Of a stretch of 64,000 bases of DNA, positions 9,533 to 37,140 are shown in pieces. A program made the translations under genes and the position numbers. Source of the DNA: Orbicella franksi (Eukaryota); assembly GCA_964199315.1 (NCBI GenBank), contig OZ116709.1:7750001-7814000 (forward strand), given 5' to 3'. The first letter of the stretch is position 1. Every line of letters begins with the position of its first letter. Below the pieces are notes generated by a model. It made no database searches. It had not been told where the DNA came from and was given only the letters and a program-made list of their open reading frames with translations.

Positions 9533-9833
9533 ATGTCGGAGAGTCGTATTCGCTCTTCCATCGAAGCTGATGTACAGCGCGTTATGTTGGAGAGAGGCAC
9601 AGAGAAAGGAAGTCGGGGAAAACATGTGCAATGTTGTGTTAAAGGGTGTTCTACGAGGGTGCCCAAGTTACGTCAACATATCAGAAAGTCCCATAGGGAG
9701 CTCTGTCCTGTGTCATGTTCTACTTGCCCGGCAAAGTTCGTGGGACAGAATGATTTGAATATCCATCAAAGAAACGGATGTCCCCGCCGAAAGCATCTAA
9801 GTTATCGAGTGACCACCCCGGGAAGCTTGATAG
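9533..9833 (+). CDS. OAS-A exon 1: tandem zinc fingers (C-x4-C-x9-H-x4-H and C-x2-C-x12-H-x4-C)
   Basis: CCVKGCSTRVPKLRQHIRKSH and CSTCPAKFVGQNDLNIHQRNGC. Ends ATA G|gtaagc (phase 1). Confidence 0.75.
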
Positions 9834-12800
9834 GTAAGCATAAAGCAATGTGTTTAATTATTGCATAGTTAGTGGAGGGGAATTAAATTTTTGCAAGCCA
9901 AGCAAAGAACGTGTCAGAACGTGCAAGGATTAACTATGATTATTGTAACCCGTGAAAATTTTCCAAAAAGGCTAGTGGCCCATTCCAAAGTTGTCAAAAG
10001 AACTTTGCGACCCATCCAACTCGAGGAGCAAGGTTCTAGTGTGTTCCGATAGAACAAGATTTTCGCACAGTCCCCGGCATACATTTATTATGCACGCAAG
10101 TTTGCGACTTCCGTGATGCTCGGTTTCACGTAAATTACGAAAACGAAATTCGAACTTCCAGTTTCGTTTTTCGTTTACCCGCGCCATCGGAAAAGGGAAT
10201 TCGAACTTTTATTTTCGTTTTTCGTTTTCCTAGTACATTGAAAGCGAAATTGGAACTTCTATTTTCGTTTTTCGTTTTCTCATGACCTCATTTCCGTTTT
10301 TCATCTTCTATTTCCGTAAGACATTGAAAAACGGAATTTTGAACTTCGATTTTCGTTTTTCGTTTTCGTGTTCTATTATATTATCTCAAGACAGTAGCAG
10401 CAGACGCTAGCGCTTTTTTGGGCTTAGATGTATTTTTTCCTACCTTACGATCCTCAAAATGGACGTCATAGCTAACTGTACGTGATGTCACTGACTGTAC
10501 ATACGGAGTTTTGATTTCAACAAATAGCATAAAAAAAAACTGTGCAGCTGTATTTATAGAAAACTGATATTTACGAATTTTTCAGCCCGTTACAAACCAC
10601 ATCGAGCGAGCTGACTGTTAATAAAAACTTTCTGTTCAATAGGACTACCACGATATCGATATCAGCAAGGAAATGAAATTATGCGTACACTATCACAAAT
10701 CACGGGATTAAATGGTTATTTAAGTCAAAAAGTTTCAGTACAAAGGCTTGTCATGATTGATTTGGAAAATATAGTCGAACCTCCGATATGGCACCTTCTA
10801 CTTCGATATCGACCGGTCAGTGTAAAACGCAGACTGCTGACTGGAGACCGGGGATAAAATGCATACTGAGGGTAAAATGTAGACTGCAGACTACAGACGT
10901 TTTAAGTATATATCGACGGTGTTATTTCCATTATCCATTTCTAACCGGAAACAGAGTTATTCAGGCTAATCGCAGTGAAAGTTTGCAATGCTCCGGTTAG
11001 CCTGAATATCACTCAGGTTAGCTTAAAGAACACTCCGGTTTGCCTGTCTCCGTTTAGCTCTCAATGATGGAAACGGTAACACGACTCAGTTAAAAAGTCT
11101 ACAGTCTGCATTTTACCCCTGGTCTGCAGTCTGCATTTTATCCCAGTCTGCAGTCTGCAGTCCGCAGTCCTCATTTTACACTAACTGGATATCGACTGTT
11201 CCATCTGCCACTGACCTTCTCTTCTTGATACCATGACAAGTGAAAAGCCTTTTCACACTCAGCAAACTACTGTGCAACCCCTTATATTCGGGTATCGGTT
11301 CTTGATTACCTCGAGAAGGTCTTCATAACTATTATTTTCCTCAGTAAGAGAACGGCGGACAAAGACTTCATCAAGGATGTGGTTTCCAGCTCTATTGTTA
11401 GCGAAAGGAAGTGCCAACATTCTTCCGATTCAGGTAACACAAGAAAGTGACAAAAACAAAGAAACGAAAAACGAAAATCGAGGTTCAAATTCCGATTTTC
11501 AATATCCTATAAAAACGAAAGACGAAAAAAGGAAATGAGAATTAGAATTCTATCGTCCAAAGTTGTGGGAAAAACGAAAATAAAAGTTGGAATTCCATTT
11601 TCAAAGTAGCAGGAAAACGGAAAACGAAAATGGAATCTCGGGGTACTTACCATTTACATGGGAAAACCGGAAATTCCAGTTGGAAAATCAAATGGTTCGC
11701 GCCATTCCGTTAGGGAAGCTTCAGAAAATATGGGCTGTGATTTGAGGCGATGCTATTTTTCTGCTCTTTTAAGTTTCTCTAACTGATGTGGATATACTTT
11801 ATAGCGATTCCTTCTCCCGCAACGTCGCACGCAATTGTTTAATCTTCATGCCTGAAATTTCCAACTGGATGGTTTTTGTAAATGGTAAGCACCCTCGAAT
11901 TCCTTTTTCCGATGGCGTGGGTAAACGAAAACGAAATTGGAAGTTCGAATTCCGTTTTCCCACATCGTAGAAAAACGGTTGCACTGAGATACACACATTA
12001 CAGTAGCCTATTAAGCAGACGCCAGTGCTCTTTCGGCTTGTATTATTGCCTCCCTTTACTATCACAAATCACGGAATGAAATGGCTATTTAGGTCCCAAT
12101 ATAAAGTCAAAAGGCTTGTCATGATCGATATCTTTCAAAAACGAAAGACGAAAAAAGGAAATGACAATTAGAATTCCGTTGTCCAAAGTTTTGGAAATAC
12201 GAAAAACGAAAATAGAACTTAGAATTCCATTTTCAATGTAGTAGGAAAACGGAAAACGAAAATGGAATCTCGAACTCCCTTTTACGATGGGGTGGTAAAC
12301 GAAAAACGAAACTGGAAGTCCGAATTCCGTTTTCCCACATCGTAGGAAAACAGTTGGCACTAAGGTACACGCATTCTCTTACCGGAATTTCGTGCCGCGA
12401 TCGAGGTGAGCCTAGGCCTGTCATTGCAGTTGCTAAGACAATCTACCTTATTGGTAATTAATTTCGCGGGTCTTTAATTTCGCAATTTTCGCAATTTTAA
12501 ATAAATCGCGAAATTAAAGACCCGCGAATAAAAATCCTCACCAAATTTAGACACACGAAATCTAACACCCATATAGAAAATTCAAATCACAGGTGAATAA
12601 AAAAAGATTAACATGTAATAACAACAACACTGAGTACAATGTGTATCACGGCCAAGTTTCAAATAGCTAAATTTATGTACTATTATCATAACAACCTGTT
12701 GCCTCCATTGTTTTTCAACTTGTTTTTTACAAACAGTCAAATTCATGGCTATAGCACCAGAACAGCCAATAATTATCGCGTGCATCATTGCCGGACTAAT

Positions 12801-35500: not shown

Positions 35501-37140
35501 TTCAGTTTATAGTCCATAATGAAGTCTATGTGATTGCAATTTCATTGTTTTGGGGAATACATAAACTTCTGAACTATGTGAATTAGCTGTGTGTGTGTGT
35601 CTACGTTGAATCAAGCCAAGTTAATTAGAATGTGTATTTTTTTGTACTTTGCAGAACAAAGGTACAAACTGTACGAAGAAATGATTGATTGTACAACAGA
35701 AGACCAGGATTTTTACTCAGCACATTTGGTGAGCTTACAAAAGGAGTTTGTCAAGGATCAACCACCGATTGTGAAAAACTTAATCCGTCTTGTAAAGTAC
35801 TGGCGCAAAACCTGTATTGAAGACAAAAGCACTGGTGAACCTAGACTGCCATCTTCATATCCGCTGGAGCTCATCACCATAGATTGTTGGGAGAACGCAG
35901 CTGGAAAAACTTCATTTGACATTCGGGCCGGCTTTAAAGCTGTTCTTGAACGGTTAGCTGATAATTGCCACATACACGTCATTTGGCATAAATACTACGA
36001 TAAGGATCTCGCTGAGAGAGGGATCAAGATGTGTGAAAGGTTCGTTTTCGTTCCTGTACAGGGAAAATGGCAAGGAAGACCCAGGCGGGGGGAAGATGCC
36101 CATATAAAAGCGATGGCCGGGGGTGATCATCATACCTTTTAGGGGGTCAAATTTGTCAATTGATACCTCTTAGGGTGCTAAAATCAAGGATGACCACTGG
36201 TAGAGTTATCGCGGTAGCGTTTACTGTGCTGAGCAGAGAAGTGTGACAGGAACCAATTGCCAGTCAAATTTTGTGATATTCTTTATTGCTGTAATGAAAT
36301 GGTGAAAATGTCACTTAACATTAACGAGTTGTTTTAAGATTGGTACCATTTAGCAGTGAAAATGAATTTGGGCCACACCCACAAAACTAATTTTAGGGGT
36401 TGTTTCCAAAATTTCCGACAATCACCCTCTCGATTTAATATGGGAGCCCCCACCGGAAGGAAGACAGCCTAAATGAAATTCAGATAAATCATAGGAAAAA
36501 GGGTCAGCTGACAGCCACGAGATGCACGCTAAGGCGATAAAGGTAGAACAGCACTAGGTTCAACATTTTTTGTAGAAAAAAAGCCCAGTGCTGTTCTACC
36601 TTTGTCGCCTAAGTGTGCATCTTGTGGCTATCAGCTGACCCTTTTTCCTTTGATTTACATATTAAGCCACATCCCACATTTTTACCATTTTTACCATTTT
36701 TTGACATTCAGATAGTTATGATAGACACCCACAGACAGATAGTAAGTGAGCCAAAGAATGGTGGAGCGAAAGTCAAGTAGTCAGATAGAGATACAATCAG
36801 CTACCCAGTCAGAAAAACAGGCAGACAGAAAGGCTTACAGACAGGCAGACAGAGACAATCAAGTAAATAGGCAAACAATAAAAAAACATACAGAGATTGA
36901 GAGTCTGAGAGACAGCGACTGACAGATTTCATTTAACAGCATGTTACTGGACTGAAACACTGTCTTCTTCCACGCAGCCCACCATTTGTTCTGGACCCTG
37001 CCAACCCAACCAACAACGTATGCAGTGCTAGTGATGCCGAGGGATGGAAAACCGTGGCAGATGTGGCTAAAATGACACTTCAGAGGCAGCCACTGAAGGA
37101 CATCAACTTCAATAAAAACTGGGAAATAATACAGATTTAA
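29341..37140 (+). CDS. OAS: Zinc-finger-fused 2'-5' oligoadenylate synthetase B, about 422 aa; exons 29341-29599, 31161-31336, 33113-33398, 35655-36039, 36978-37140
   Basis: Canonical GT-AG sites, phases 1,0,1,2, total 1269 nt with no internal stop. GGSVGKGT, DIDCVVF, FDIDLLP, LIRLVKYW, LPSSYPLELITIDCWE, PFVLDPANPTNNV. Confidence 0.9.
33467..35459 (-). mobile_element. Unclassified TIR DNA transposon deletion derivative with NHL-repeat coding remnants, in OAS-B intron 3
   Basis: 17-bp imperfect TIRs agagggtcatgaagggg / ccccttcacgcccctct and GTAG duplication. Empty site in OAS-A intron 3 (gtcatgtagagacag, about 16237-16251). ORF remnants at 33927-34980. Confidence 0.8.

Follow-up and report, generated by a model that had tools for sequence, protein, structure and literature searches.

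Two tandem OAS-family genes of the coral Orbicella franksi with a zinc-finger pair in the first coding exon

Gene structure and RNA joints of the two OAS genes

The stretch of DNA analysed here (the window) comprises 64,000 nucleotides (nt) of the coral Orbicella franksi (GenBank assembly GCA_964199315.1, contig OZ116709.1, positions 7,750,001 to 7,814,000 of the forward strand). It contains two 2'-5'-oligoadenylate synthetase (OAS) family genes, hereafter copy 1 and copy 2, in which a first coding exon with two zinc fingers precedes the exons of the enzyme body. OAS enzymes are among the oldest antiviral sensors of animals and, to our knowledge, their activators and the readers of their products are largely uncharacterised outside vertebrates.

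The finger exons had been noticed in an earlier note on this DNA, made from the letters alone, as two mini-ORFs (short open reading frames) with paired zinc fingers, each with a phase-1 donor matching the next OAS exon. Both mini-ORFs are present, that of copy 1 at 9533..9868 (111 amino acids, aa) and that of copy 2 at 29341..29619 (92 aa), and both donors, G/GTAAGC (the slash marks the splice site), were seen after 9833 and after 29599, respectively. The length from ATG to donor is 301 nt in copy 1 and 259 nt in copy 2, which gives phase 1 in both. The joining of five exons at canonical AG/GT borders (Table 1) reproduced exactly the stop-free proteins of 420 aa (copy 1) and 422 aa (copy 2) that the note had described. 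A tblastn search of the window with both spliced proteins returned only these two genes, and no third OAS gene.

The position of the start codon is informative about the role of the finger exon. Exon 2 contains no in-frame ATG in either copy, and a stop 9 codons before each exon 2 shuts its frame. Farther on, the first Met lies beyond the GS motif of the nucleotidyltransferase core, and a product initiated there would be devoid of both the N-terminal helices and the GS motif. In both genes, therefore, the ATG of the finger exon is the only one from which a complete OAS is predicted. The possibility considered in the earlier note, that the OAS starts from a different exon, found no support, as no other start codon for the OAS body was found.

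Concerning RNA, contigs from four runs were compared with positions 28500-33500 of the window. The contigs of run X8 differ from the window at 0-2 positions, and most intron bins are at zero depth. The predicted GT..AG joint between the finger exon and exon 2 of copy 2 (29599>31161), for which the earlier note had proposed a search in RNA, is present in X8 with a depth of 15. The joint between exons 2 and 3 (31336>33113) is present in the same run with a depth of 68, its shorter side being 176 letters long. Depth falls to zero in X8 just beyond the finger donor at 29599, so the ORF of copy 2 is not read through to 29619; that the finger ORF ends there, another possibility raised in the note, is not borne out in this run.

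The available gene models of Orbicella faveolata give a different picture of the 5' ends of this cluster. The RefSeq protein XP_020627944.1 is identical to copy 2 across all 277 residues of exons 3-5, which places the window in that species or a very near relative of it. The model starts, however, at an ATG in intron 2 (around 32912) and reads from there into exon 3, without exon 2 and without the finger exon. Its 5' end is wrong, because the RNA joints splice exon 2 to exon 3. In other models of the O. faveolata cluster (P0235, P0254), the start lies at exon 2, or the last exon of the OAS gene upstream has been fused to the model; a fusion of this kind is seen in the neighbouring model XP_020627890.1. 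So, it can be said that the current O. faveolata gene models for the cluster are wrong at their 5' ends.

These models bear on an alternative in which there is no fusion, the finger ORFs being separate small genes or remnants and the joints being read-through or assembly noise. It would agree with the omission of the finger exon from the O. faveolata RefSeq models P0235, P0236 and P0254, and with the presence of only 28-30 letters on the finger side of the junction contigs. However, a side of 28-30 letters is what is expected from a k=31 graph at a branch point, the joint occurs at canonical GT..AG sites, and the missing depth beyond the donor in X8 speaks against read-through to 29619. Moreover, the RefSeq model of copy 2 that starts in intron 2 and lacks the N-terminal helices is contradicted by the joint of exons 2 and 3 in RNA, while the newer Montipora RefSeq models do include the fingers. 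The absence of a fusion is considered very improbable and largely refuted.

The region upstream of the start codon is about 91% identical between copy 1 and copy 2 over 162 bases, the introns being about 84-88% identical. The exon 2 acceptor of copy 2 lies 21 nt upstream of the position homologous to that of copy 1. Judged from their sequences, the two loci go back to a tandem duplication, the duplicated segment taking in the finger exon together with about 160 nt on its upstream side. A reading of this upstream stretch as a promoter with transcription-factor sites was considered and dropped, as a homologous stretch lies inside the 5' untranslated part of the RNA contig L001, a paralogue dealt with below.

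Table 1. Exons and associated features of the two OAS genes in the window (positions of the window; all on the plus strand).
Feature	Positions	Strand	Content
Copy 1, exon 1	9533..9833	+	Start codon and two zinc fingers (short-spaced C2H2-like, then C2HC); phase-1 donor G/GTAAGC
Copy 1, exon 2	14701..14855	+	N-terminal helices of the OAS body; no in-frame ATG; aligned to the N-terminus of solved OAS1/OAS2 through a Montipora relative
Copy 1, exon 3	15903..16176	+	Nucleotidyltransferase core: GGSxGKG motif, D-x-D, third Asp in DLLPTF; Pfam NTP_transf_2, E 4.6e-5
Copy 1, exon 4	16441..16816	+	OAS1_C domain, Pfam E 8.3e-27
Copy 1, exon 5	17711..17867	+	End of OAS1_C (LDPANPTNN motif) and stop codon
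Copy 2, exon 1	29341..29599	+	Start codon and two zinc fingers; phase-1 donor; covered by X8 RNA contigs with 0-2 differences
Copy 2, exon 2	31161..31336	+	176 nt; no in-frame ATG; RNA joints at both ends in X8
Copy 2, exon 3	33113..33398	+	Nucleotidyltransferase core, Pfam NTP_transf_2, E 8.8e-6; identical to RefSeq XP_020627944.1
Copy 2, exon 4	35655..36039	+	OAS1_C domain, Pfam E 1.6e-26
Copy 2, exon 5	36978..37140	+	Last coding exon, with stop codon
Alternative acceptor segment, copy 2	30496..31160	+	Long exon continuing into exon 2; X8 joint 29599>30496
Conserved leader or promoter region, copy 1	9375..9532	+	Upstream of the start codon; copy 2 counterpart at 29180-29340

The enzyme body and the zinc-finger module

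Exon 3 of both copies contains the sequences GGSVGKGT and DIDC and the Asp of DLLPTF, i.e. the GS motif and the three catalytic Asp residues of the family. The Pfam profile NTP_transf_2 scores 24.2 and 26.5 bits (cut-off 21), and the core is followed in both proteins by OAS1_C (PF10421), with the E values given in Table 1, up to the LDPANPTNN motif, which is found in exon 5 of both copies. A full-length relative from Montipora capricornis (P0261) was compared with proteins of solved structure: it matches human OAS2 with E 2.6e-61 and OAS1 with E 2.3e-38 (pig and human OAS1 both about 1e-38), over residues 86-393, which correspond to the whole body. Through this relative, the GS and Asp motifs of the window proteins align with those of solved OAS1 and OAS2. 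On these sequence comparisons, the membership of both copies in the OAS family is firm.

The enzyme part appears to be under constraint in this gene pair: dN/dS (the ratio of non-synonymous to synonymous rates) between the two copies is 0.50 in exon 3 and 0.51 in exon 4, and the value of about 0.5 for the two exons together differs from neutrality (p = 0.009). In exon 2 the ratio is 2.1, estimated from few sites (p = 0.25).

The body is colinear, from the N-terminal helices to LDPA-PT, with vertebrate OAS1 and with single units of OAS2 and OAS3, which have the same nucleotidyltransferase plus OAS1_C composition; vertebrate OAS1 and the coral proteins both keep the GS motif and the three catalytic Asp. 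Presumably, the human OAS1 gene also has an intron just before the GGS motif, as the coral genes do. On the other hand, vertebrate OAS1 begins at a Met of its own, a few residues ahead of the first helix, has no zinc finger, and senses RNA through the body. A basic helix stretch is found in the coral proteins as QREFVK (copy 1) and QKEFVK (copy 2), aligned to QRDFLK of human OAS1. Among the human OAS1 residues that we take to be the basic ones binding double-stranded RNA (dsRNA), R195, K199 and K60 are aligned to basic residues in the coral proteins, while the positions aligned to K204 and K42 are not basic. For a sponge OAS, activity without a dsRNA requirement has been reported (PMC6307210).

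The finger module adds to this body an N-terminal part with the pattern C-x4-C-x9-H-x4-H, followed by C-x2-C-x12-H-x4-C. The zinc ligands are, in copy 1 numbering, C34, C39, H49, H54, C62, C65, H78 and C83, and they are present in both copies, together with a ninth conserved Cys (C58) and the core residue F69. The statement of the earlier note that all eight ligands and the finger core are retained is thus confirmed by alignment. An alignment of 25 finger sequences, with a mean column identity of 43%, contains eight residues that are invariant in 25/25, namely seven of the ligands (C34, C39, H49, H54, C62, C65 and H78) and the core F69. C58 is nearly invariant, and C83 is replaced in 4/25, among the most distant sequences. 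Over the same set, ligand columns are 98% conserved versus 63% for the other columns. Given the divergence of the window copies, identity at all nine Cys/His positions would arise by chance with a probability of 0.01.

The structure predicted by AlphaFold on the finger alignment consists of two beta-beta-alpha units, with pLDDT >90 at residues 31-80. The module is strongly basic, with 12 Lys+Arg versus 2-4 Asp+Glu, i.e. a net charge of about +8 to +10 over 56-58 residues, and a short linker connects it to the first OAS helix (copy 1, up to about 17 residues; copy 2, about 10). Its two beta-beta-alpha units follow one another, with seven residues separating the last His of one from the next Cys, and in this it resembles the fingers of WT1, KLF4 and Zif268, which also give its best, albeit weak, Foldseek and PDB sequence matches. 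It differs from them in that finger 1 has 9, not 12, residues between the second Cys and the first His, and in that finger 2 ends in Cys (C2HC). Concerning the dsRNA-binding finger of the JAZ/ZFa type (PF12171), only copy 2 scores, with 16.9 bits, below the cut-off of 22.6, and the spacing of that type is H-x5-H versus H-x4-H and H-x4-C in the coral module.

With respect to OASL, the coral proteins are similar in that an accessory domain, acquired by exon or domain shuffling, has been added to an OAS body, but the ubiquitin-like domains of OASL are C-terminal, and the coral accessory part is an N-terminal zinc-finger pair. A C-terminal ubiquitin-like domain is absent in both copies, as the proteins stop 50-55 residues into exon 5, within OAS1_C.

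Finger-OAS genes in other corals and in the literature

Fingers homologous to those of the window were found on a full OAS in RefSeq models of Montipora foliosa (XP_068703160/1 and XP_068701100/1) and M. capricornis (XP_068718913), which thus have the same architecture; their fingers are about 63-64% identical to those of copy 1. The model XP_073230619 of Porites lutea has the same five-exon layout with two classical C2H2 fingers ahead of the OAS, unlike the pair of the window, which combines a short-spaced C2H2 with a C2HC finger. All finger-OAS models in RefSeq are automatic and named '2'-5'-oligoadenylate synthase 1-like', with no comment on the fingers. The count of such models is a lower bound, set by word matching and length limits.

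Two diverged loci from other coral assemblies provide further examples. At L003, a finger exon precedes OAS exons 2-5, behind which the tandem array continues with its next finger exon. The finger exon of L004 encodes four fingers (P0013), which share only about 46% identity with those of the window, and it precedes OAS exons 2-4 of a diverged paralogue. The donor at either locus is G/GT in phase 1, and the codon is completed by the acceptor. L002 was left out of the comparison, its exon 1 lying beyond the fetched flank, behind a reverse-transcriptase insertion, and L008-L010 were left out as too short to show the sequence after the finger exon. The proposal of the earlier note, that the finger exon is the first coding exon of the OAS genes, is supported by the RNA junction, by the independent RNA contig L001, in which a finger exon is joined in frame to OAS exon 2, by the lack of any other start codon and by the layout and phase kept in other corals.

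The number of fingers varies, from two in the window copies to three in L003 and in L001, and four in L004. Many paralogues (P0005, P0008 and P0010-P0013 were compared) have an extra N-terminal finger of the form C-x2-C...H. In both window copies (9533-9600 and 29341-29400) the two Cys of this extra finger have been lost and a helix remnant, ..VQRVM.., is kept. Intron 1 of L003 contains, at 5875-6030, a second, partial copy of the finger exon's 3' half, whose last finger is degenerate and whose donor is again G/GTAAGC, and a similar extra half-finger segment is contained in P0260, isoform X1 of Montipora foliosa; this suggests that the half-finger duplicates are alternative cassette exons.

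The searches of larger collections returned mostly isolated exons. With the exon 4 ORF, a word-based search gave only exon-sized ORF fragments from metagenome-style gene calls, a second such search led to the RefSeq models, and one confined to the finger region of a Montipora protein gave only the two clusters of Montipora foliosa. A HMMER search with the finger exon covered 1.84 billion representatives and returned no finger-OAS protein near 420 aa in length; its close matches are finger exons read through the donor, ending in ...IGKHKAM. Two JGI metagenome contigs (L006:2690-2797 and L007:1776-1883) weakly match (E 0.003) the region of the N-terminal helices in the Porites OAS, about 300 nt downstream of a distant finger ORF (P0081). 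These contigs end soon after and were not counted as a fusion; they hint at the fusion in a further organism.

As Orbicella, the acroporids (Montipora, Acropora) and Porites belong to different scleractinian families, the fusion probably predates their divergence, and the fingers were probably gained, lost and exchanged afterwards.

The earlier note had proposed a candidate new OAS architecture. No description of a zinc-finger-OAS fusion was found in the literature searched (on OAS, zinc fingers, corals and cnidarians); the architecture as such is already visible in the RefSeq models of Montipora foliosa, M. capricornis and Porites lutea. Zinc fingers are not mentioned in two papers on OAS evolution (PMC10400998 and PMC6307210, the latter including O. 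faveolata), nor in a paper on eukaryotic CD-NTases that includes OAS (PMC10732462). OAS is named among the fusion partners of the TRADD-N domain in marine invertebrates (PMC8195603). Those fusions are alike in that marine invertebrates shuffle OAS with immune-type domains, and differ in the partner domain, the passages of that paper dealing with OAS naming no finger partner. So, the architecture appears to be present in a few automatic gene models, and yet undescribed and uncharacterised in papers.

Interpretation, alternatives and neighbouring features

The gene structure, conserved in other corals and with no other start codon for a complete OAS, the use of the junction in RNA and the intact catalytic motifs are the observed base of the following interpretation, which is considered probable as a whole. 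The window contains two tandem paralogues of a coral OAS-family nucleotidyltransferase, in which the first coding exon adds, via a short linker, a strongly basic beta-beta-alpha finger pair to a complete OAS body. From its sequence, the enzyme is predicted to make 2'-5'-linked oligoadenylates or a related nucleotide signal. The fingers would be an extra nucleic-acid-binding or targeting head, determining to which RNA or DNA the synthetase is directed, or by which it is activated, and they may add to, or alter, ligand recognition by the OAS body. The varying number and type of fingers, and the fast-changing surfaces with fixed ligands, fit a sensor family with diversifying recognition heads.

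Several observations weigh against this interpretation or limit its reach. The first group concerns the splice forms. In RNA contigs, the finger donor of copy 2 (29599) is joined to three different acceptors. An alternative joint in X8, 29599>30496, has a depth of 26 versus 15 for the productive joint; this form runs into exon 2 and meets a stop after 11 extra codons, so that its product is finger-only and 97 aa long. The joint assembled in run X5 is 29599>33113, which skips exon 2 and shifts the frame, the depth of the contig being 217; X5 carries one difference from the window, at 29511, and may be an allele or a close paralogue. A third case is the RNA contig L001 (Logan contig of SRR26351952, 281-1263; protein P0008), which represents another paralogue and whose 5' untranslated part runs colinear with the sequence preceding the finger ATG. 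Its three-finger exon is joined in frame to OAS exon 2, but the order is finger exon, exon 2, exon 4 and exon 5; the skipping of the catalytic exon 3 shifts the frame, and the predicted protein of 191 aa consists of the fingers and the OAS N-terminal helices. No single RNA read or contig covering exons 1 through 5 was seen. Finally, the junction of copy 1 (9833>14701) is deduced from homology to copy 2 and from RNA coverage of its finger exon, 0.7-0.94 of whose sampled words are present in a large number of polyA RNA runs, from several related organisms. Non-productive splice forms make up a considerable part of the transcripts seen; the in-frame form clearly coexists with others and is perhaps not the main one.

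These splice forms lead to an alternative in which the finger exon is mainly a regulatory leader. Most transcripts would be non-productive, giving finger-only peptides of about 100-190 aa or targets of decay, and the full fusion would be a minor form; the fingers would then matter mostly as a small protein in their own right or by switching OAS output. The depth of the 30496 joint relative to the productive one, the frame-shifting joint in X5 and the 191 aa product of L001 all go in this direction. However, a complete OAS is impossible without the finger ATG, although both copies have kept their OAS exons intact and under constraint; diverged loci preserve the phase-1 match, and contig word depths measure isoform abundance poorly. 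We regard such a purely regulatory role as quite unlikely. In the preferred interpretation, too, the finger-only or frame-shifted splice products made from the finger donor may regulate output.

The second group of observations concerns the nature of the fingers. Their Pfam scores are below the gathering values, with 15.9 bits for zf-C2H2 (cut-off 25.2) and 16.9 bits for zf-C2H2_4 (cut-off 27), and they are atypical members of the C2H2 class at best. Because of these scores, surveys of OAS architecture based on Pfam will miss them. A Foldseek comparison of the finger model with the PDB gave no significant match (best E 0.014), the weak matches being the DNA-binding fingers of WT1, KLF4 and Zif268, and the present data do not discriminate between binding of RNA, DNA or protein. 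Furthermore, with a dN/dS of 0.87 the finger exon cannot be told from neutrality in this single pair of copies, and it shows non-synonymous change about twice as often as exons 3-4 do (p = 9e-5). Rapid change at the surface over an unchanging zinc scaffold fits diversifying recognition as well as relaxed constraint, which one gene pair cannot separate.

In agreement with part of these data, the fingers of a real fusion protein could serve, in place of nucleic-acid sensing, for protein-protein contact, oligomerisation, auto-inhibition or placement in the cell. There is a parallel in vertebrates, where OAS1 isoforms differ in membrane targeting. The unusually short spacing of finger 1 (C-x4-C-x9-H-x4-H), the extra invariant Cys C58 between the fingers and the want of a significant structural match to nucleic-acid-binding fingers are compatible with such a role, as is the fact that the OAS body retains part of its own basic RNA-binding helix (QREFVK/QKEFVK). 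Against it stand the high net positive charge of the module and the canonical spacing of seven residues between the fingers, and also that the nearest structural and sequence matches, weak as they are, are tandem C2H2 fingers that bind DNA or RNA. A role of this kind is considered possible but unlikely, and a nucleic-acid-binding or targeting head is preferred.

The third group concerns the need for the fingers and the fate of the product. In some Acropora models (P0237-P0239) the finger exon has decayed, or the model starts at a linker Met; these paralogues are without fingers and, from these losses, the OAS body can apparently do without them. In addition, the product of vertebrate OAS1 acts on RNase L, which has been reported to be absent in corals (PMC6307210; PMC10400998).

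Taking the preferred interpretation one step further, the tandem OAS arrays with diversifying finger heads might be sequence- or structure-specific nucleic-acid sensors, their 2'-5' signal being read by a receptor other than RNase L and the finger-only forms acting as competitors that tune the response. This extension is speculative, and we hold it to be rather unlikely in its full form. In more general terms, a conserved and expressed finger-headed OAS would show modular ligand recognition in early animals, with a recognition domain bolted onto a synthetase. It also offers an experimental handle, since enzymes with and without fingers, and paralogues with different fingers, can be compared.

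Some further features of the window were recorded. For the loose letters preceding 29333 in X8, the possibility of a spliced leader lying upstream was considered; their appearance is rather that of a colinear allele with minor differences. Short stretches at 29001-29167 and 32007-32173, and also at 9881-9930, have RNA contig depths of hundreds to thousands and many loose ends; positions 29078-29127 are 98% identical to 9881-9930, at a different position relative to the finger exon. These high-depth stretches resemble copies of a small and abundant mobile element.

Intron 3 of copy 2 is 2.3 kb long versus 0.26 kb in copy 1, because of an insertion with two overlapping ORFs of 190 and 159 aa (33927-34951, minus strand), the second of which has a single weak match to an NHL repeat (E 1.4e-4). 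Between the two OAS genes, on the minus strand, there are three consecutive long ORFs of 425, 155 and 119 aa (25009-27562), with no Pfam match at E 0.01, which could represent a single interrupted gene or what remains of a mobile element. On the plus strand, downstream of the OAS pair, lies a set of tandem, apparently intron-less BTB-BACK(-PHR) genes (50565-51296, 54192-55535 and 58229-59569), composed of genes of 447 and 446 aa and a shorter copy of 243 aa.

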